Origin: Mobula hypostoma
Lineage: Eukaryota
Assembly (NCBI RefSeq): GCF_963921235.1
Contig: NC_086102.1
Span: 43,958,001 to 44,022,000 of the forward strand
Reading direction: 5' to 3'
DNA length: 64,000 bases
The notes under the pieces are model-generated. The model saw only the letters and a program-made list of their open reading frames with translations. It did no database searches and was not told the origin of the DNA. The position numbers and the translations under genes are program-made. Every line of letters starts with the position of its first letter. The first letter of the stretch is position 1. Of this stretch, positions 8,601-64,000 are shown piece after piece.

Positions 8601-9344
8601 CAATCATCTATGGAGCCCTTGCTATTAATCTCTTCTATTATATCCACAATTTTTGCCTGGTACTCAACCCAATGGGCCAAAGAAAAATTATACCTAGCAG
8701 CCCTCTCCTCAACTTCTACTATCAAATTTCTACCAAATCTACATAATATAGGATAGTGATCACATCCTAGTGTGTATCAGTCCATAACATCCCATTCCCC
8801 AACCATAGATAAGTCTGTGACTACAAGTATTCTTTACAATATTAAATCTTGTAGGCCTTCCGTTATTTAGCAGTACCATGTTGTATTTATCTAGAAACTC
8901 CTCTACTACCGCTCCATTACTATCTTAATTTTCACTACCCCATATAGGATTATGGGCATTGAAATCTCCAACCCAGATTACTGGGGATTTTACCTTATTC
9001 GTAATTTCATCACAATCTGATAACATCATATTACCTGGATTATAAAAGTTAATCAAAATTATTTGACCATGAGAGCTCCAAAACTCCATAATTTCAAGTT
9101 TAGATTTAAAATCAAGTCTTCTAAACTGGAGTCCTGTTTTTATGAATGTTGCACACCCTCCAGCAGATTTACCCGTTCTGTCAGCTCTCAAACTATCATA
9201 TCCAGGGATCACAAAATCTAGATGAGACTTTAACCATGTCTCCTGTATACAGATCAAATCAGGCTTGTCTTTAAAAGTTCCAAGTAATCTTTTTAATTCT
9301 TGACCATTTGCAGATAAACTTCTTGTAATATTAAAAACATCCAA
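5644..9344 (-). pseudogene. LINE ORF2 (APE-RT-RNase H), broken by stops and frameshifts
   Basis: ORF-track pieces 8925-9344, 7753-8274, 7292-7805, 6305-7258, 5828-6244 and 5644-5865 give the domains in order. Confidence 0.9.
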
Positions 9345-28510: not shown

Positions 28511-29650
28511 GTGCAGGAGGAAACGATAGAAGCCCGCTTAGTAAAATTATATGAAGAGGTGGAGGCAGAAGAGAGGGAAAAATGGAGGAGAAAAGGAGCA
28601 AAGGAGGGACCAGATGGGTGCTGGACACACGGGGAGGAAAGAGTCACGGTGGCCCCACCCTGTGTTAGACAGATACTACTAAAGTTATATCATGGGGCGA
28701 TGCATCAGGGAAGGCAGAGCATGATCACAACCCTCCGGCAGGACTGGTGGTGGCCAGAGATGGGCGGAGATGTTGAGAAATTCTGCCACCATTGTATCAC
28801 TGGTGCCCAGCATAACCCTGGTAAGGGCAGAAAGCTACAGCTGGCAAATCAGCCTTAGCCGAGAGGACCCTGGGAAAACATCCAGATAGACTTCACAGGG
28901 CCCCTGCCAAAAAGCAGGGGGAAAAGCTACTGTCTAGCAATTATGGACCACTTCACCCGGTGGGTAGAGGCTTTCCCAACAAGGGACTGTACAGCCAGCA
29001 ACGCTGCATGGATCCTAGTTCAGGAAATCCTCCCCAGGTGGGGAACCCCATTTCAGATGGATTCAGATTAGGGAGCACATTTCATGGGGAAAGTGATGAA
29101 GAAAAGGGATTCGACAATAGTTCCACGTACCCTACCACCCCCAGAGTTCAGGGATGGTAGAAAGGATGAACCGAACAATCAAGAATGCGTTAGCCAAAGC
29201 TATAGCTGAGACAGGAAAGACATGGGTTGATGTATTACCAGGAATCCTGATGAGATTGTGCACAACCCCAAACTGCACGTTGGGTTTCAGCCCCTACGAA
29301 TTATTGATGGGGCGAGCAATGCGACTCCTTTATGGGGTAATTATGGTTTGCAGGGAGCCTGAGGCTTACAGGGATAGATTGACACAATATGTGAAAGACC
29401 TTTGTAACCAACTTAAAGTGTTGAAGGACCGAGTGAAACAACAGCAGCGAACCACTGATCAGAGAGAGCCAGAGGGAAAGGGGATAGTCCTTCCACAGGC
29501 CGGCGACCAAGTTATGGTGAGGGTGCTGCTAGAAAGGCCAATGTTTTCCCCCAGGTGGATAGGACCACAGACGGTACTCTTAGCCAGTGATATGTGTGTC
29601 TGTGTACAGATTCGGCGAGGCAGCCAGTGACAACACTGGACCCAGATTAA
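28511..29650 (+). pseudogene. Retroviral-type integrase remnant
   Basis: HHCC region (LYHGAMHQG...FCHHCITG), IQIDFTG, QMDSD and YHPQSSGMVERMNRTIK, plus C-terminal GDQVMVR...PRWIGP. Confidence 0.9.
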
Positions 29651-35375: not shown

Positions 35376-36680
35376 GAAACATAGAAACATAGAAAATAGG
35401 TGCAGGAGTAGGCCATTCGGCCCTTCGAGCCTGCACCACCATTCAGTATGATCATGGCTGGATATCCAACTCAGAACCCTGTACCTGCCTTCTCTCCATA
35501 CCCCCTGATCCCTTTAGCCACAAGGGGCATATCTAACTCCCTCTTAAATATAGCCAATGAACTGGCCTCAATTGTTTCCTGTGGCAGAGAATTCCACAGA
35601 TTCACCACTCTCTGTGTGAAGAAATTTTTCCTCATCTCAGTCCTAAAAGGCTTCCCCTTTATCCTTAAACTGTGACCCCTCGTTCTGGACTTCCCTAACA
35701 TCGAGAACAATCTTCCTGCATCTAGCCTGTCCAATCCCTTTAGGATTTTATACGTTTCAATAAGATCCCCCCTCAATCTTCTAAATTCCAGTGAGTATAA
35801 GCCTAGTCGATCCACTCTTTCTTCATATGGAAGTCCTGCCTTCCCAGGAATCAATCTGATGAACCTTCTTTGCACTCCCTCTATGGCAAGAATGCCCTTC
35901 CTCAGATTAGGGGACCAAATCTGCACACAATACTCCAGGTGTGGTCTCACCAAGGCCTTGTACAACTGCAGTAGTACCTCCCTGCTCCTGTACTCGTATC
36001 CTCTTGCTACGAATGCCAACATACCATTTGCCTTTTTCACCGCCTGCTGTACCTGCATGCCCACTTTCAATGACTGGTGTACAATGACACCCAGGACTCG
36101 TTGCACCTCCCCTTTTCCTAATTGGCCACCATTCTGATAATAATCTGTTTTCCTGTTCTTGCCACCAAAGTGGATAAGCTCACATTTATCCACATTAAAT
36201 TGCATCTGCCATGAATTTTCCCACTCACCTAACCTATCCAAGTCACCCTGCATCCTCTTAGCATCCTCCTCACAGCTAACACTACCGCCCAGCTTCATGT
36301 CATCCACAAACTTGGAGATGCTGCATTTAATTCCCTTGTCTAAATCATTAATATTGTAAACAACTGGGGTCCCAGCAGTGGAGCCTTGTGGTACCCCACT
36401 AGTCAAAGTCTGCCATTCTGAAAAGGTCCTGTTTATTCCCACTCTTTGCTTCCTGTCTGCCAACTAATTCTCTATCCACGTCAATACCATACCCCCAATA
36501 CCGTGTGCTTTAAGTTTGCACACTAATCTCCTGTGTGGGACCTTGTCAAAAGCCTATTGAAAATCCAAATATACCACATCCACTGGTTCTCCCCTATCCA
36601 CTCTACTAGTCACATCCTCAAAAAATTCTATAAGATTCATCAGACATGATTTTCCTTTTACAAATCCATGCTGACTTTGT
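35376..36680 (-). mobile_element. CR1-type LINE 3' part with a 330-aa RT C-terminal ORF and a short-repeat tail
   Basis: ORF 35471-36463 (SGVPQGS, ISKFVDDMKLGG) and a gaaacata tail repeat at 35376-35397. Confidence 0.9.
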
Positions 36681-37209: not shown

Positions 37210-37476
37210 TTATGCAAATTGTTGTAGAGAAAAACTTGTGGTTGTATGGCAATTAGCATTCTGGGCTCTCTTTGACGTGGGACAAACGCTGACTGTGAAG
37301 TTACATACGGGTTCTTCATAGATAAGATTATTTTTATCTTTGACCTTTAAAGCAGCATATTCTGTTTCATGGGCCTGTGCTGGACTTCTCAATTCTTGCC
37401 TTTGCTTCCCCGTGGGAGGATTGCTAAAATAAACAGATGCATATTGCAGAGTTTCATCACTTAAAGAAACGTTAAC
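37210..37476 (-). CDS. Terminal cytoplasmic exon with tyrosine motifs (ITIM LQYASV, ITSM-like TEYAAL, YEEP)
   Basis: A strong acceptor tttttgtgttgcag|GTT (phase 0) is followed by 88 open codons to TAA, in non-repetitive sequence. Confidence 0.8.
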   Translation of the reverse strand, partial: VNVSLSDETLQYASVYFSNPPTGKQRQELRSPAQAHETEYAALKVKDKNNLIYEEPVCNFTVSVCPTSKRAQNANCHTTTSFSLQQFA

Positions 37477-47792: not shown

Positions 47793-47863
47793 TCTGTTTA
47801 CTGAATCTTTCTTCCATTTTCTCTTTGTTTGATTATCAACATTTTTGTCATGGGCTGATGAAT
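47793..47863 (-). CDS. Juxtamembrane cytoplasmic exon (DSSAHDKNVDNQTKRKWKKDSVNR, phase 1-0)
   Basis: tttttatag|...|gtaagt; the frame is open and converts the phase 1 end of the TM exon to the phase 0 start of the terminal exon. Confidence 0.7.
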
Positions 47864-49127
47864 CTATAAAAATACCATGAATATCATAAGCATCTCAGGT
47901 TAGTGGGACATATATTTTTACATAGAAGCAACAGTCTTTTTTGACTGTTTTGCATTTTTAAATCTTTTTATTAATTATTATTGAAAATCAACAAAAAAAG
48001 TAACAGTCTTGATACTGTAAGTAACAATTGGATACTAATCAGTATCAACATTTCAATTTCTAATTCTTCAAATAATAATTGGCAAGTCAGCTTTTTTAAA
48101 CTACATTCCTAAACTGTGGGACTGAATACCTAAAACTGTAAGGGATGCAGACTCAGTTGACAATTTTAAACACCAGTTCAAAACCTATTTACTTAACCTT
48201 GTTTTTAACTAACATCTATTTGTCTTTTATTTTCATGTTTGAACTTTATCTAATTGTAAAGGACTTTGAACTACATCGTTTGTATGAAGAGTATTCTATA
48301 AATAAATTATTATTATTAATAATTATATTTGAAAGCTATGTTGGCTTAATTGGATGCAGAACTATTTATATTTAGCTGCACTCATTTTCTGATATAAGCT
48401 TATTTCGAAAGGAGCAAAAAACAAGCAGCTCGTAGGATGGGGGAAGAGGCAGAACAAGCCTCTTGTTGGAGTTGGAGTAGGCGAGAGGAGGGAAGCTGGA
48501 AGCCAGGAGCAGATGGGCAGTGATTTGGCCACCACTGCCGGCCCACCAACTGGAGAGTGTCGTGGTTAAGGGTCGAAACACTCGGTGAAGGTTGGGAACC
48601 ACCTGATGACATCTGATCCTGGCTGAAGGCTACAGTTACCTTATAAGGTAACTGGAGAATGCACCCTAACAGGTGTATGTAACAACTGCTTTTTTTTAGA
48701 TGAACTATTGTAATTTTGTAGGCTACATTATTATCTTTGTTGTGCATTTAATATATCAGTAATATTTGAGTAATATTGTAAATATATTGTTTGATTAAGC
48801 ATTTTTTGTTCATATAAGTAATTCATTATATGTAAAAGTACATGAATGCCATACATCATTACGCCACCACATCATAAATACGCACCTCACTGAAAATAAA
48901 TACGAAGAGTACACATTTGTCCTGGTCTCCCCGCGTTTTTCTTTTGATTAGTTTTATGTTTTGGAGTTACGAAACATAACAGTACTCTCTCCAGAAAATG
49001 TTATTTGAGTAGAATTTAAAACAGATTTTCACTTTTCTAATTACTTTTGCTTGAGAACTAAATGGGATGTTCACATTGATATACTCAGTTCCGTTACCAA
49101 GTAAAAATAAACAATGTATCTGATTAC

Positions 49128-49229
49128 CTTTTCCATTCTTGTGTTTACAGCATCGATTATTAATGATCCAGAAGCATAATGGTACAATGAGGATAAGAGT
49201 CAGCAGAGCAAAATAATACTTGGGGAATC
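49128..49229 (-). CDS. Transmembrane exon (GFPKYYFALLTLILIVPLCFWIINNRCCKHKNGK, phase 1-1)
   Basis: ttttgaag|...|gtaatc; a 19-aa uncharged hydrophobic stretch followed by CC and basic residues. Confidence 0.8.
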
Positions 49230-49669
49230 CTTCAAAATTACAATTGAAACATAAATTAAAACAATGTCACAATGAAAAGCAAATAGATCTCTAACTGATG
49301 CATGTTACTTTACATAAAATATTTCAAATAGACTCATACATATAACATAAATCATACATTAAGACAGAACTACATTTAAATCTACCATTTCTCAGAGGTT
49401 GTCCTCATGAAATATGCCAATAGATTCCCTTCTTAGGATCTTCACACAGAATATCAACAATACTTCTGCTTATGTACAATCTAATTCTATTTCTACAAAA
49501 ATCCTTAAATGCACAAAATAGCCTTTCAGTGGACAAAACCCACACTGTCATGGAAGATGATATCCAGAGTAATGATCTAATTATTCATGCCAAGGAACTG
49601 TCATACTTCATTGATTACCAATACAGTGAATTGCCACGATATAGTATTTTGTAAATTACCACAGCATAA

Positions 49670-55960: not shown

Positions 55961-58900
55961 CTCCCTCCACTTGTATTCTTTTCTCCTCACAATGACCAAT
56001 AACATAAATAATGCTCAGCTTTCATAATTACTTGCCATCTCTGGGTTACTGGCTGCAGCAAAACACCAGGATCTCTGAATCACAGAGCTCTGTGGTCCCT
56101 TACCTTTTATATGTATCTATACAGTATCTTACATAAAATATATACATTGGATTTCAGTTAATTGGGCCAGAAGTTATTTGGGACAACATTTAAAAAACAA
56201 AAACTAATGGAGAAAACAACCAGGATTCCCTTGGCTTATTTAGGGCAGAAGACTGCTGCTGAACAGTTTCTAACCAGCGTCAGAGGCATGTGCCTGCGTG
56301 GCTGCGTGGCACACTACACTGTGCTTAGAGTGAACAGTTTTTAAACAGTGACAGTTGAGTGTGTTTATGTTCAAGAAGCAATGACTTTTGTCACTGATTT
56401 CTGATGAGAAAAAAGCAGTAAGACAATTCAGAACTGTTTTGTCACTGTGGTTTCAAGCATTCTGGCTTGGAGATTGACGAATCGGCCGGGAGTGAAACTT
56501 GAAATTATTTCACTACTTCAACAAGTTAGGAACTATGAAGAATTTGAGGGTATCAACAATCATCTTGAATGTTAACTTTGCTCCCCACCAGAGTCACATC
56601 TCCCCTGTGGCTCAAAGTAGCTGTTTGCATGCGACAGCAGCCATGCCCTGATACCCTGCTTTGACAGGCAGGCTAAAGCAGGCGAGGGTAGCCAGGGAAG
56701 GGTTTCATACCACAGTGAGATAGGGACATGCCTGCTCTAGCATACAAAGTCATGTCAGGCGGACTGGGTGAATGAAATCTAAAGTGAGATCCAACAGCCA
56801 GGAAGGCAGTTCTGCAACAGTCCATGAACAGCAAAGGATATGATGAGGCAGGGAAGAAGCCATAGTCATCCACTGCAACCAAGGAGACCCCTGTTGTGCT
56901 GTCTGCCCGTATCACTGGATCCGGACTTATGAGGAGACAATGGGACTGTCCTTGGGCAGTGGATTTTCCACTTTAGAAACTTCCCCGCACATCGCTGGAT
57001 AAGACAGCAACCATCAGTAGTTTTGGTAGCATTCCAATTTGTTCTGTATTTCATTTAAATGCATACTTTGTTACTCAGTTAAATGGTAGTTTGTTCTTTT
57101 TATATAATATTTTAACTATTTCTATTAAAGGTTGGCTAATTGGGCCAGGCACTAAAATATACTGGATGGGCCCAATTAACTGTATTAACTATGTATAGAG
57201 GGGGAGAGGGGGAGAGATTATATTTTATATATATATATATTACACAAGAGGGAAAAAACAGAAAATACTGGAAAGACTTGTTAGATCAGACAGCATCTGT
57301 GGAAAGAGAAGCACGGTTAATGTTTCAAGTTAAGGACCTCGTAAGAACACAGTGCAAAACAGGCAGATAGAAATGCCAATGGAGAGAGCAACAGAAATAA
57401 TTTCAGGTGGACATTCCTGGTGGGGAAGTGGTAATGAATTCAGCAATGAATTCATCATCTTTGCTGATGCTGCAAATCTGAATAACAACAGAAAGTGCTG
57501 GAATCACTCATCAGTTCAAGCAGCAGCTGTAGAAAGAACCAGAATGTCAATATTTCAGGATAAAGATCCTACCACATCTTTGTTATTTTTAATTTAGTAC
57601 TTCCTAATTTTTCCCACCAAAGTGTACAATATCCTATTTTTCAATATTATGCTCCAGATGGTGGAACTTCCCAGCTCACTTAAATTTCATTTTGTAATCA
57701 TTTTGTAGCCTGCTTCTATCCTACTTTCCTTCCTGTCCCTGTGTCATCAACAAATTTAGCAATCATTCAGTCAACATCTTCATACAAATCATATATAGCA
57801 TAATAAGAACTCAGAATCAATCTATTTAGCATACCATTTGTTTCATCTTGCCAACTATTTCTGTGTGCTCTCTGCTTTCTGTTCGACTCTCTGGTCTTTT
57901 ATCCCTCCCAACATTAACTTCTACCGTGAGCTTTTAATTTTTGCAAAGACATTTGATGTGCCACCTTATCCAATACCTCTGGAAATCTATATATAGAACA
58001 TCAATAGGGGCCCCTTTAAATAACTCCAATGCATTGGTCAAACATTTCCTCTTGAGAAAACCACGCTGACTTTTCTTTTGATCTTTCTGCACACTATAAT
58101 ATTTTTGACATGCTATAATATTTTAATTACAGCTTCTACTATTTTACCTTTTAACAGATATTAAACTAATTGGCCTGTAGTTTTCTTGGGTTCTATTCCC
58201 CTCCCTTCTTCAATAAAGGGGTTAAAATGCCATTTTCCAGACAAATCGGATTTTCGGGTATTCTGGAAATTGAAAACTGGTGCATCAGCTCTCCCAGGAG
58301 CAGTTTCCTTTAAGACCCTAAGGTGAGGTCCACGAGGATTCAGGGACTTGTCCACGTACAGCTCCGATAATTTGCCCAGTAGTACTACCACGGCGATTGC
58401 AATTCCCCCAATTTCCTCCCTCTCTTCCAATTCCCGATTTACAACTTCTTTTCCATTAATTCCCCAAACTCGCTTTTTGTGGGAGCAGCTCCTGCTGCAG
58501 TCGTTCATTTATGGCTGGCTTTGTCCCACTCTGATTCTTTTTCTTTTATTGGTTGTTCAACCTGCTTGGGAAGTCAGCCTTGTTGGCGGTTCAACTGGAA
58601 CCCTTTAAACATTAATTCTGTTTCCTCTCCGTTTAATTTTTCGCACAGCGCCATGCAATCGTGATTTAGAGCAGGGAAATCTGGAATGATGATGAATTCA
58701 ATTTCAGTGAGAGGCGATTGAAAGGGACACCCCGTCGCAGCCTAAAACTGCAATTTAGCAAGTCATCGTGACCTGGGATTTGATCTTGCAGCGCCCGCCG
58801 AGTGGGCAAGGCACTTGTTCACTGAACACAGAAACTTCGATTTCCTGCGCACTATAGCGATTGGAATTGGCTACAATTTGGCGGGGAGAAAGTGAATTTT

Positions 58901-59169
58901 GCCCTGATAACAATCAATTCCGCTGAATGTTGTTATTTTCTCTATTCACGACCACCCATGAATTGAAAATTCTCTCGGCGGCAAATGATCACAATAAATA
59001 CAATTCGGACGTTGTTTCTTTCCATTGCTATCCTTCCCCGAGCACCGCAACTTTCGGGGTATAAATTCTATGACCCAGCTGAAAGTGTTGCAATTGGCCA
59101 CCTAGTGCAGTTTATAAACCGTGGAATTTCAACTGTCAATTGATGAAGACAGTATAAATTAGATTAATT

Positions 59170-59213
59170 TTACAATATGAACTTTGCGTTGCCAAGTAGT
59201 ATCGGCCAGGGAC
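59170..59213 (-). other. Candidate alternative or degenerate terminal exon (GPWPILLGNAKFIL*)
   Basis: The acceptor gtgcccttccccag|GT lies 587 nt after C1b in phase 1. A hydrophobic continuation, INLIYTVFIN, is in a shifted frame. Confidence 0.35.
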
Positions 59214-59800
59214 CTGGGGAAGGGCACTAACCCAGACAGGACGATGGACGAAGTCCGGTAAAATTCTACTTTTTTTTCGCCATTTATATTTTACAGTATT
59301 GAGTTTTGTTTGATTGGATTTATATGAATTGGTTCATTAGATAATATCTGTAGCCTATTGCCATAATTCGTGAATGTGTTTTGCAGTAACGCTGTTCCGA
59401 AAAAGAATACTTCGTTGGTGCAAGCGCACGAAGAAACAAAATGTTGGAGATATTAGCAGATCACGCGGGTTGTGTAGAAAGTAAACGACAGTGTATGCTT
59501 CAGGTCCAGGGACCAAGGTCATGGTAGCCTCAGCTCTTGTCTCTATCCAATTCCTTTCATAAACCTTCACAAGTAGCAAATTATTTGAAACATTCACGAT
59601 AACACACAGCGCAAGTTTTCTATCAATTCAATAAATTGGAATAAATTATTTCGCAATAAAAGACTGTAGATATTGTAGGCGTTACCCGAACGAATTGCGT
59701 TCAACATATGGTTTTATAAATTTACAAATTTTATCTCCAAATTTCACCCGTAATTGGGAGAAGCAGGTTGTGAGATTTTCTCCCCGTGTAAACCACCTAC

Positions 59801-60094
59801 CTCGGTTGAAAGTGAAACTTGTGCTCACACTCCCTGTAACGTGTCGAACCAGGCAGGTGGCGACCTGAACTGACTCCCGCCGAGCGTCGTTCACCCGCAG
59901 CCGGGAGCTCAGGCTGTAGGTAAGGTCCTCGTTTACCCTCAGCGGATCCGCCTCTGTTTCATACGAGACATCTCCCGTTACAGTCCAAGAAATATTCAGA
60001 TCTTTCGGGAAAAATCCCGCAGCTACACAAATCAGGGTCTGAACCCCAGTGGCTTCGTTGTTGGGATCCAGAGAGAGGGAGACGTCAGGCTTCG
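59801..60094 (-). CDS. Ig C1-set exon 2 (C1b), phase 1-1
   Basis: tgtgcag|CG...CGA G|gtaggt; motifs LICVAAGFFPKDLNISW, DLTYSLSSRL and TCLVRH. Confidence 0.93.
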
Positions 60095-60673
60095 CTGCAC
60101 AGAACGGGAGAATTAACACATTGTGAATTTTACTGTAACCCAGACTGATACAGACAGCAAGAGTGGACACAACTGAAGACGGTGCATGATATAAAGGTAA
60201 CACTGAACTGAATTGATTATTTTGTGTCTCAAAATTCGCACCGGCAGGAAGAGAAACAAAATACAGCCCGAGAACGGAATGAATTTGGAATGTTACAGCG
60301 AGTGTAAATAAAAAAAGATGCTGGAGATTTAGAATGTTAAAAAAACAGAACCGCCGGAAGTATCCAGCTGGTCTGGTCGAAGAGACGCAGAGTTCTGACG
60401 AAAGGTCTTCAATACCAAATTTTAACTCTGTTTCTCTCTCCACATTTGCGACCTGACCTGCTGAGTGTTTCCAGCACGTTCTAGTTTTATTTTTCAGTTC
60501 TTTTCGACCAGGCACATGTTGGTCACAAGATGCAAGTTACGCTGGTAGGATGTTCCAACAAGGATGTTTCACGGTTCCGATTCCCCATTAAAAATCCCTA
60601 ATTTTACTTCCAAATTTCACCCGTAGTTGAGAGAAGCAGGTTGTGAGATTTACTCCGTGTGTAAACCACCTAC

Positions 60674-60967
60674 CTCGGTTGAAAGTGAAATTTGTCCTCA
60701 CACTCCCTGTAACGTGTCGAACCAGGCAGGTGGCGACGGGAACTGACTCCCGCCGAGCGTCGTTCACCCGCAGCCGGGAGCTCAGGTTGTAGGTAAGGTC
60801 CTCGTTTACCCTCAGCGGATCCGCCTTTGTTTCATACGAGACATCTCCCGTTACAGTCCAAGAAATATTCAGATCTTTCGGGAAAAATCCCGCCGCCACA
60901 CAAATCAGGGTCTGAACCCCAGCGGCTTCGTTCTTGGGATTCAGAGAGAGGGAGACATCAGGCTTCG
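60674..60967 (-). CDS. Ig C1-set exon 1 (C1a), phase 1-1
   Basis: Same splice signals and motifs as C1b, with 12 nt differences in 294. Confidence 0.93.
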
Positions 60968-61832
60968 CTGCACATAACGGGAAAATTAACACATTGTGAA
61001 TTTTACTGTAACCCAGATGGATACAGACAGCAAGAGTGGACACAGCTGAAGACGGTGCATGATACAAAGGTAACACTCTGAACCGAGTTGATTATTTTGT
61101 GCCTTAAAATTTCACACCGGCAAGAAGAGAAACAAAATACAGCCCGGGAACGGAATGAATTTGAAATGTTACTGCGCGTGAAAATAAAAAAAAAGATGCC
61201 GGAGATCAAAAATAATTTTTTTGAAAAACAGAACCCGTTGGAAATATCCAGCAGGTCAGGTCGGAGAGTCGAACATGTCCAACGAAAGTTCTTCAATACC
61301 AACCGTTAACTCTGCTTCTCTCTCCGCATCTGTGACCTGACCTGCTGAGTGTTTCCAGCACTTTCTAGTTTTATTGTTCAGCTCCTTTCGACCAGACATA
61401 CATTGGTCAGAAGATGCAAATTACACTGGCAGTGTGTCCCAACAAGGACGTTTCGCGGTTCCGATTCCCCATTACCAATTCCTCCGGTGTTTAACCGATT
61501 TCTGATCGGCTATTTTACCCGCCTCTCTACCACTGAATTTTTGGGATGTGGCGCTGATGTATTCAGCGACAAGTCTTCTCTTCCCCATGCGGGAGATTGT
61601 TTCGGTGTTGCTTAATCTGGTTACTTTGGGTCAGAAGCAAAACACAAACCAAACGCGGCGAAGACAGGATTCCTTCAGCAAGTCAGAGGGCGTTTGGAGA
61701 AAGGGACCTAAAGACTCGTTTTCCAGCTCGGCCATTGGTCTGAGACTTTGGCCCCAGTTCCCTCGCTTCACACTTTGCCCGGTGTGCTGAGTATTTCCAG
61801 TGTTTACTGGTTTCGTTTCATACGTACTGTAC

Positions 61833-62165
61833 CTCGGATGGTTACTTCTGTTCCGTTTCCAAAATATGTTTCCCAGGGTCTCGAATCCATTATCAGCGCT
61901 GAGCAATGGTAGGTGTCAGAGTCATCCACAGTCACTTCCCGAATGACCAGCCCGCCTTCCTTCACAGATACAGAGAACCGAGTGCCATTTTTCAGGAAAT
62001 TATTGGACCCGTTTACAGAATGGTCTCTAATCCGAGTCCAATAATATCTCGCCGAATCCACCCGCTCGTCCCCGGATAACAGGGAACAGCCGATCCGAGC
62101 TGTCTGTCCTCGGAGAAGGGTCAGAGCTGAAGGTGTCTGATTCACTTTCAGAGCAACAATTGGCC
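61833..62165 (-). CDS. Single-exon germline VJ-type Ig V domain, phase 1-1
   Basis: ttttctgttctag|GG...CGA G|gtacag; IGC, YYW and DSDTYHC motifs, and a J-like YFGNGTEVTI in the same exon. Confidence 0.93.
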
Positions 62166-62258
62166 CTAGAACAGAAAATCACCACAATTAGCAAAAAGAT
62201 TCAAAATTATGAGAAGGCAACGAGAATAAATGTCAAACGGAGAGAACGCGTGAATTAC

Positions 62259-62307
62259 CGGGGAGAAACAGCCAGAGCGTGTACAGTAAGATTCCGAGTA
62301 GTGACAT
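62259..62307 (-). CDS. Signal-peptide exon MSLLGILLYTLWLFLP(G)
   Basis: ATG at 62307, 16 hydrophobic codons, G|gtaatt donor, and a 93-nt intron in frame with the V exon. Confidence 0.9.
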
Positions 62308-62356
62308 GTTGGGTGAAGGAAGAGTCGGGGCAGGAATCACCCAGCTCTGATGGTCA

Positions 62357-62416
62357 TTTTATAAAGTGTAAAATCGCTGCAGAATTTGTGGCGGTTTCAC
62401 TTCAGTGCGTCACGTG
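62357..62416 (-). promoter_or_regulatory. Putative proximal promoter of the VJ-C1-C1 gene
   Basis: TATAAAA 50 nt upstream of the ATG (62357-62363), IRF/Ets-like GAAGTGAAAC (62394-62403) and an E-box CACGTG (62411-62416). Motif matches only. Confidence 0.4.
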
Positions 62417-63329
62417 TGGCAGACTGGCGGAAAGTTTAATTAAACAACTCTTCAATCGTTCCAAGCATTGGCCGTCTTGCACTGACAACTGATGAAATAG
62501 GCAAACGAGAAGCTGGAATTTGTAAATAACCACTGAAAATATTTTCTGAAAAGCTAGCAGATGCACTTAAGTAAAAACGAAAACATTTTGGCAACGTTCA
62601 GCAGGTCAGAGAGCATCCAGAGAAAAATATGAGAAAAAATTTTTATCATTTCTGAGAGAAAGTGTGATTCAAGAGACTCAGGGGTAATGCTGTGCTGGAA
62701 GAACAAGGTGAATGAGCAGCATCTGTGGGAGGGAAGTTCGCATGGAGACGCTGCATCGGTACTGAGTTATCGTTTCATTGAGACATGAAACAGAAAAGCA
62801 GAAAATATGTCGCTGCCGGACTTGCTGAGAGGAGCATCTTAAGTTCTCATTTCAGCAAATGATCACCTGCTTTAAGAGATCGATCACTCAAGCGAGGTGA
62901 GGACTTGTCCGCTGTGAATGGTTGGTATCGAGAAATACCGGCTGAGTCTTAGAGTCACGGAACAATAGGGCCCGAACGCAGCGCCGTCGGTTCAACCAGC
63001 CCACGCAGACCACGTTATCCATCTCTAGCCAGTTCCAATTTCCTGCATTCAGCCCATATCCCTCCAGGCCCCTTCCCTCAAGTGGTTCTTATATAATACT
63101 ATTGCACATGATTTTTGCACTATTTAGAAATTTTATGTCTTATCACTGTACCGCTGCCACGAATTCTGCGACATATTTCAATATTAATAAACCTGATTCT
63201 CATTCTGATACTGGTTTTTCCTCAACCACTTCTTCTGGCAGCTTGTTCCCTATACTCATCACCCTCTGCGTGGGAAAAGTTGTCCCTGGGATCCCTTTTA
63301 AATTTCCCCCCTCATCCTAAATTTATGCC

Positions 63330-64000
63330 TGTCATAAGTGGGGTGCTGGGAGCGGACCCAAATGCAAGACACAGACACTGAAGTACTAGGAACCGGACTA
63401 GAGTTAGGGACGGGACTGGATGCAGACTAGGAGCTGGGACAAGAACACAGACTTGGGCTAGGACTTGACTAGGAAAGCGGGACCTGGACGAGGAACTAGG
63501 AACTTGGAACCTGGACAAGGACTCCGAGCCAGAGACTGGACAAGGACCCGAAACCTGGGTCTTGACTCGGGCTCGGACCCCGGATCCAAGCAAGGAGATG
63601 ACGTGGCTACAGGACTGGACGACGCACATGGACAGGACGAGAACACAAAGCCTGACTTGGACAGGACTTGGACTAGACGAGGTTCTTGGACGTGGCCAGG
63701 ACTAGACGAGGTTCTTGGACAGGACGAGAGACTCCAGCACAGGACGAAGGAACTCCAGCACCGGGCTGGACGAGAACACGAAACCCTGATTTGGTCGACG
63801 GAAAGACAGGAACGCAGAGCCTTGGTCGAGGGAGAGAGGAACATGGAACACAGAGCCGGGACCCCTCCTTGGGAACAGGACGTAGGGCCAGGACTCATAC
63901 ACAGAATGCAGAACACAACGAGATGTTTCTCAACACTAGGTAGCAGCAAACGGCCAGACCTACCTAGCGAAGGTGTGGACACAGAGACAGTTCAAAACAA
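63330..64000. mobile_element. LTR-like repeat with internal tandem arrays, truncated by the window end
   Basis: Similar to 4682-5480 from TGTCATAAG onward. Confidence 0.65.

Follow-up and report, generated by a model that had tools for sequence, protein, structure and literature searches.

A stretch of 64,000 nucleotides from the ray Mobula hypostoma (RefSeq contig NC_086102.1, positions 43,958,001 to 44,022,000), referred to here at its full length as the window, carries on its minus strand a seven-exon gene that is likely to encode the inhibitory member of a family of paired SIRP-like cell-surface receptors of sharks and rays. The gene spans approximately 25 kb, all of its exons are open, the splice sites are canonical and the intron phases are compatible. 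The translation of the seven exons is identical throughout to the M. hypostoma protein XP_062908587.1, which carries the RefSeq label SIRP-alpha-like, and the span of the RefSeq gene, 25,098 bp, agrees with that of the gene within the window. The gene is already annotated in RefSeq, and it represents a known type of receptor and not a novel class of antigen receptor.

The first exon (62259..62307, 49 nt) starts with an ATG at 62307, encodes most of the signal peptide of a split leader and ends in phase 1 at a GTAATT donor. The V exon (61833..62165, 333 nt; acceptor TTCTAG, donor GTACAG) supplies the end of the leader, a V-set domain and a germline J-like G strand, and is followed by two exons of 294 nt, each encoding a C1-set domain: C1a (60674..60967) and its tandem duplicate C1b (59801..60094). 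All introns between these four exons are phase 1 with AG/GT splice sites. An initial annotation, made from the sequence alone, had described four in-frame exons with canonical splice sites and phase-1 introns, encoding a leader, a V domain with a J-like strand in the same exon and two C1-set domains, and this description is borne out on the minus strand at these positions; the Pfam scores exceed the gathering thresholds for the V-set domain of exon 2 (E 2.8e-9) and for the C1-set domains of C1a (E 1.5e-12) and C1b (E 5e-13). These four exons are real but form only the 5′ part of the gene, since the 3′ end of the C1b exon, which had been overlooked, is a live donor site, and tblastn with related proteins located three further coding exons downstream. 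Exon 5 (49128..49229), placed by tblastn with family proteins, the gene model, hydropathy and contig junctions, encodes a stalk, the transmembrane (TM) helix FALLTLILIVPLCFWII and a juxtamembrane CC motif. Exon 6 (47793..47863; tblastn and gene model) encodes a membrane-proximal cytoplasmic segment. Exon 7 (37210..37476) encodes the remaining cytoplasmic tail, with the stop codon and two motifs, LQYASV (Tyr393) and TEYAAL (Tyr421), that resemble the immunoreceptor tyrosine-based inhibitory motif (ITIM); it was recognised by motif scan and by 98% identity to the tail of a relative from Mobula birostris.

Six public runs listed as probable RNA, a label that is a guess, cover parts of the window. 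A 256-nt contig from run X1 aligns with zero mismatches to 59800-59904, 49128-49231 and 47814-47863 and therefore shows C1b, the TM exon and exon 6 spliced together in this order, exactly as modelled (junctions 59801|49229 and 49128|47863). A 329-nt contig from run X2 is exact over C1a from edge to edge (60674 to 60967) and then continues into other sequence, and a third contig, of 185 nt and from run X3, is an exact match to 61835-62019 within the V exon. The basis for placing both C1 exons in one mRNA is the RefSeq model together with the two-C1 models of three other species. These data bear on the idea that the gene is a decaying or non-functional copy, or that the long model wrongly joins unrelated exons. 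Two introns, of 10.6 kb and 10.3 kb, are indeed very long and crowded with transposon remnants, RNA depth is low, and the codon differences between C1a and C1b are mostly non-synonymous (8, against 3 synonymous). However, seven open exons with canonical splice sites, three of which are joined exactly by one contig, a tail 98% identical to the model from the other Mobula species and an exon layout conserved across sharks and rays speak for an intact gene, and decay or misjoining is scarcely credible and already largely refuted.

Some contigs fall within introns of the gene. Exact low-depth contigs from run X1 lie at 61576-61779, in the intron between V and C1a, and could represent unspliced pre-mRNA, DNA carry-over or a separate transcript. 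At 56500-57100 and 48400-48840 the summed contig depth reaches hundreds to thousands in all runs, with many mismatches; these stretches look like expressed high-copy repeats and do not appear to belong to this gene.

The encoded protein is a single-pass polypeptide of 469 residues comprising a signal peptide, a V domain, two near-identical C1 domains, a short stalk without cysteine, the TM helix, the CC motif and a tail of 123 residues, and, judged from its sequence, it has the build of an inhibitory immune receptor. The V exon carries a Trp, a DSDTYHC (YxC) motif and the J-like strand FGNGTEVTIR, all within the single exon. C1-set domains are nearly restricted to antigen-recognition molecules, and the two copies score 48.1 and 49.6 bits against PF07654, for which the curated cut-off is 21. 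Hatherley et al. (2009, PMC2785349) list three hallmarks of this set: the BC loop opens with (F/Y)(F/Y/H)P, exactly 13 residues separate the B-strand Cys from the C-strand Trp, and the F-strand Cys is followed by xVxH. All three are present in both C1 exons, as C-VAAGFFPKDLNIS-W with 13 residues including FFP and as C-LVRH after the second Cys. No cysteine was found in the extracellular part outside the domain disulfides, and hence no membrane-proximal Cys for a disulfide-linked dimer. In the tail, motif scanning shows that Tyr393 and Tyr421 fit the ITIM or immunoreceptor tyrosine-based switch motif (ITSM) pattern and lie 28 residues apart. A pair of ITIM-like motifs with this 28-residue spacing is kept in all tail-bearing models examined (5/5 from batoids and 6/6 from sharks), and shark tails have up to four such tyrosine motifs.

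The initial annotation had taken the gene to be lineage-specific, which does not hold, as close relatives are present in six batoid species (M. birostris, M. hypostoma, Hypanus, Hemitrygon, Pristis and Narcine) and seven sharks (Scyliorhinus, Mustelus, Stegostoma, Hemiscyllium, Heterodontus, Heptranchias and Cetorhinus). Their automatic names conflict, ranging from SIRP-beta-1-like and PTPNS1-like to T-cell receptor (TCR) beta chain-like, immunoglobulin (Ig) heavy chain Mem5-like, Ig kappa-like and uncharacterized. The relatives constitute one conserved elasmobranch family, ancestrally with a single C1 domain, in which inhibitory and activating genes occur as pairs. Genes of one kind encode a TM helix and an ITIM-bearing tail, and those of the other kind join the same ectodomain to a TM helix that has a basic residue and to a short tail. 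The partner genes of M. hypostoma, Hemitrygon and Pristis have an Arg close to the outer TM end (His in one Hemitrygon model), followed by a tail of 4-18 residues. Within the window, tblastn with six family proteins did not find an alternative activating TM exon, and neither these searches nor those with the V and C domains as queries revealed copies beyond the seven exons. In Pristis, the paired genes lie approximately 88 kb apart and share, at 99.8% identity, a 1,756-bp block that runs across the V exon, its intron and the C1 exon; the sequence flanking the block is unalignable, and we therefore conclude that gene conversion or block duplication was very recent.

Between the M. hypostoma and M. 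birostris models, which may not be one-to-one orthologues, identity is 88% in V, 91% in C1 and 98% in the tail, and the extracellular part therefore evolves faster than the signalling end. Contigs of run X4, from a second organism and flagged as probably DNA, differ by approximately 6-10% in the V exon (61833-62108) and 3-6% in C1a, which hints at faster divergence of the V domain. Two features of individual models are recorded here as side observations. The isoform X2 models of Heterodontus and Heptranchias omit the in-frame TM exon and would yield a soluble form that still has the tail sequence. The activating gene of Pristis has a second V-like stretch upstream of its V exon (L002:16918-17109), 60% identical to residues 34-98, that may be a leftover or an alternative V exon.

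The two-C1 layout, which the initial annotation had used as a reason against an Ig light chain or TCR, is secondary. All shark proteins, as well as those of Pristis and Narcine, have one C1 domain, and two are found only in four myliobatiform models (Mobula, Hypanus and Hemitrygon); the state is common to these four species from two ray lineages. Ancestrally the ectodomain consisted of V and a single C1, and an exon duplication found in myliobatiform models only added the second. In the window, the duplication is visible as two tandem repeat units of approximately 875 bp (59718..61483, minus strand), each consisting of one C1 exon and the surrounding intron. A repeat search gave a start-to-start distance of 873-884 bp, and in a blastn comparison the two units were 89.3% identical (884 columns). 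Divergence between the units is approximately 11% in their intron parts; the C1a and C1b exons agree at 95.9% of nucleotides and 92% of amino acids. A tree of C1 domains groups the a copies, the b copies and the C1 domains of partner genes by lineage and not by position, which fits concerted evolution or repeated duplication.

Comparisons of the whole ectodomain led to SIRP. Using an AlphaFold model with a mean predicted local distance difference test score (pLDDT) of 80, a structure search of reviewed UniProt entries returned human SIRP-alpha and SIRP-beta-1 as the best matches (E 6.5e-18, 24% identity), with Ig heavy chains behind at 14-19%. In the PDB, SIRP-alpha (2wng) ranked second with 25% identity, the highest among the top hits, and a language-model search for look-alike proteins was led by SIRP-alpha clusters (0.97 and 0.96). 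The family also shares with SIRP (SIRP-alpha inhibitory, SIRP-beta activating; PDB 2wng, 4i2x) a J-like strand within the V domain, C1-set sequence after that domain, a single TM helix and the pairing of an inhibitory gene, bearing ITIMs, with an activating one whose TM helix has a basic residue and whose tail is short. Taken one by one, the domains give SIRP no advantage over Ig or TCR. The best PDB matches of the V domain were the shark antigen-receptor domain VNAR, TCR V-alpha and V-kappa, with the V domains of both SIRP and UrIg2 outside the top 60. The C1 domain by itself scored approximately 25 bits each against the UrIg2 C1 domains, IgG CH3 and other Ig constant domains, and 51.5 bits in total, over two stretches, against SIRP-alpha. 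For the segment spanning the V-J-C junction, Fab and TCR-beta chains were best at 25-32 bits, with SIRP-alpha close behind. Roughly, then, the whole gene is most SIRP-like, whereas its domains taken singly are about equally far from SIRP, Ig and TCR.

If the gene is the inhibitory half of a SIRP-like pair, the V domain with its germline J-like strand would presumably form the ligand-binding end and the two C1 domains the stalk. Once phosphorylated, the tail tyrosines could dock the tandem SH2 domains of SHP-1/SHP-2-type phosphatases and cell activation would be dampened, a step that, like the phosphorylation before it, is predicted from the motifs alone. The partner, with its Arg in the TM helix and very short tail, presumably signals via an adaptor of the DAP12 or FcR-gamma type bearing an immunoreceptor tyrosine-based activation motif (ITAM), and active gene conversion between the paired genes probably keeps their ectodomains alike.

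Several points weigh against assigning the gene to SIRP-like inhibitory receptors. The first signalling step, in which ligand binding would lead Src-family kinases to phosphorylate both tail tyrosines, is deduced from motifs, and ITIM-type motifs occur in many unrelated receptor families; a look-alike search with the tail alone gave a best score of 0.79, under the level of chance hits. In the C1 family-profile search SIRP fell outside the top 60, and single-domain profile searches place Ig, TCR, VNAR and UrIg2 above SIRP. On the side of expression, contig depth is low (approximately 3-8) in runs whose RNA status is a guess, and no junction between C1a and C1b was seen among the run contigs.

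A closer relationship to SIRP is conceivable, in which the gene is the true one-to-one orthologue of mammalian SIRPA, binds CD47 and had its locus moved later in one lineage. The RefSeq label, the whole-ectodomain structural matches with a top-hit identity of 24-25%, the lead of SIRP-alpha in the look-alike search, the shared pairing of activating and inhibitory genes and the similar tyrosine motifs are all in keeping with such orthology, as are amphibian V-C1-TM-ITIM proteins that bear the same SIRP-alpha-like label and are approximately 30% identical to the ray protein; a wider protein search with a caecilian relative as query found no match but itself. The layout, in contrast, argues the other way: the ancestral ectodomain had one C1 domain and not two, and the V-C1-C1 count equals that of SIRP only because of the myliobatiform duplication, the ancestral elasmobranch form being V-C1. 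Nor was any SIRP V domain among the top 60 matches of the ray V domain, and the partner gene differs in its Arg near the outer TM end, where SIRP-beta-1 uses a Lys in the TM helix.

The chromosomal neighbourhood also differs. The M. hypostoma partner gene adjoins a gene for a protein of 1,182 residues with a GRF zinc ribbon, SNF2 and Helicase_C, the domain set of TTF2. A TTF2-like gene, identified by this domain content and by a length of approximately 1,180-1,220 residues, adjoins a family member in three rays (Mobula, Hemitrygon and Pristis) and one shark (Hemiscyllium); the last exon of the TTF2-like neighbour gave no PDB match. The order in Pristis is the TTF2-like gene, the activating gene, a RING/B-box/filamin gene whose best PDB match is TRIM45, and then the inhibitory gene. 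Human SIRPA lies at 20p13. The human counterparts of this neighbourhood are elsewhere, with CD101, TTF2, TRIM45 and VTCN1 within one 200-kb stretch of chromosome 1 (PMC11565109). The TTF2-TRIM45 location of the ray locus, whose human counterpart is on chromosome 1 and not near SIRPA, therefore gives no positional support for one-to-one orthology. The initial annotation had set orthology with an annotated SIRP-like gene against its own reading; the RefSeq label and the SIRP-led structural matches go some way towards it, but with the differing neighbourhood the one-to-one part is unsupported. We regard direct orthology with SIRPA as unlikely and favour an elasmobranch family of SIRP-like paired receptors.

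As a side observation on this neighbourhood, the V domain also matches a multi-V protein of the PTGFRN type (Heterodontus P0026, named ‘prostaglandin F2 receptor negative regulator-like’) with 48.6 bits summed over three stretches. It is a matter of speculation that the family may share local ancestry with the Ig superfamily cluster PTGFRN/CD101, whose human members are neighbours of TTF2.

The initial annotation had placed the gene among relatives of the stock invaded by RAG, together with UrIg, but none of our results ties it closer to UrIg or UrIg2, or to the gene that RAG invaded, than to SIRP, Ig and TCR generally. In its strongest form this idea makes the gene a survivor of a pre-RAG V-J-C1 receptor, grouped with UrIg and UrIg2 and nearer to the antigen-receptor stem than SIRP, that acquired inhibitory signalling later. 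The ancestral layout of split leader, VJ exon, single C1 and TM helix equals that of one TCR or Ig light chain, the V and V-J-C segments match rearranged antibody, TCR and VNAR chains best, and UrIg2 is the top PDB match of the C1 domain by summed score. Moreover, the human TTF2-TRIM45 region is presumably at 1p13 near NOTCH2, a marker of the chromosome 1 paralogon of the major histocompatibility complex (MHC). TTF2, TRIM45, VTCN1 and NOTCH2 do not occur in the supplements of the MHC paper. The lead of UrIg2 is, however, a sum over three domains of approximately 11-26 bits each, equal to IgG CH3. In the PDB structure search UrIg2 ranked 17th with 16% identity, against 25% for SIRP-alpha, and its V domain, as noted, was not among the top 60 matches.

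The known UrIg genes differ from the ray gene in build as well as in location. UrIg is a secreted protein with three C domains, shark UrIg2 carries 9-11 of them, and both form disulfide-linked homodimers (Flajnik et al. 2025, PMC12227049). UrIg is linked to the MHC class III region and UrIg2, which has hinge exons, to the Ig/TCR complex (PMC12227049), whereas the known neighbourhood of the ray family is TTF2-TRIM45. What the ray gene shares with UrIg and UrIg2 (PDB 9dmx) is a split leader, a VJ exon that does not rearrange, C1-type domains after it, and duplicated C exons homogenised by gene conversion. The ray gene departs from them in having one or two C1 domains of a single type and an ITIM tail, and it lacks a stalk cysteine, and with it the membrane-proximal cysteine of a disulfide-linked dimer. 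A pre-RAG relic is on these grounds quite improbable. The narrower proposal of a batoid UrIg2 was rejected, there being no hinge exons, no many-C array and only 16% identity. A literature search for PRARP, which the initial annotation had named beside UrIg, returned unrelated acronyms only.

That the gene is non-rearranging, without recombination signal sequences (RSS) or a V/J split, had been proposed initially and is confirmed. No RSS was found at 59000-63000 on either strand, using a heptamer starting with CAC with up to one mismatch, a spacer of 12 or 23 (±1) and a nonamer with up to two mismatches, and V and J share one exon. An Ig-type octamer is not present upstream of the leader exon. 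The accompanying claim that the gene is neither an Ig light chain nor a TCR is likewise upheld, because no RSS was found and the gene has an exon for a TM helix as well as a tail with ITIMs. Ig light chains and TCR chains, whether rearranged or germline-joined, share with it the order leader-VJ-C1 and phase-1 exons. They differ in V framework, and the ray gene has a paired activating gene and ends in a TM helix with a long ITIM tail in place of a secreted end or a TCR-type TM. A rearranging or germline-joined Ig or TCR gene was accordingly rejected. Teleost novel immune-type receptors (NITRs) resemble the elasmobranch family in being non-rearranging, in having a V domain with a J-like motif and in occurring in inhibitory (ITIM) and activating (charged TM) forms. 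They differ in that their second domain is I-type and not C1-set and in forming very large, diverse clusters, in contrast to the only two genes seen per elasmobranch species, in which the second domain is a true C1.

No publication on SIRP-like genes of cartilaginous fish came up in literature searches, and the family has so far been present only under inconsistent automatic labels. Its definition gives comparative immunologists a family to place on paralogon maps and to include in trees of V and C1 domains. SIRP has long been discussed as a relative of the antigen-receptor precursor (PMC2785349), and the family alone does not change the picture of antigen-receptor origin. A bolder proposal, to which we attach little weight, is that the family retains the original form of a non-rearranging VJ-C1-TM receptor, with one C1 and the build of a single TCR or light chain, located by TTF2/TRIM45 in a chromosome-1-type MHC paralogon, and is either the source of tetrapod SIRPs or a third relic, beside UrIg and UrIg2, of the stock that RAG invaded. 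If this were true, SIRP-like paired receptors would date to the base of the jawed vertebrates, and the locus would provide a new paralogon anchor for models of antigen-receptor origin.

The remainder of the window contains no other recognised cellular genes, and there are no gene calls within 10 kb of either end of the SIRP-like gene. Positions 1-37000 hold transposon remnants only, comprising a LINE-type endonuclease (8928-9344), an integrase zinc-binding domain (28511-28855) and a reverse transcriptase fragment (35474-36463), and an assembly gap lies at 2325-2468. Upstream of the gene, at 63380-63900, lies a low-complexity stretch rich in GGAC/GGACT-like repeats, with long open frames of skewed, repetitive composition on both strands.

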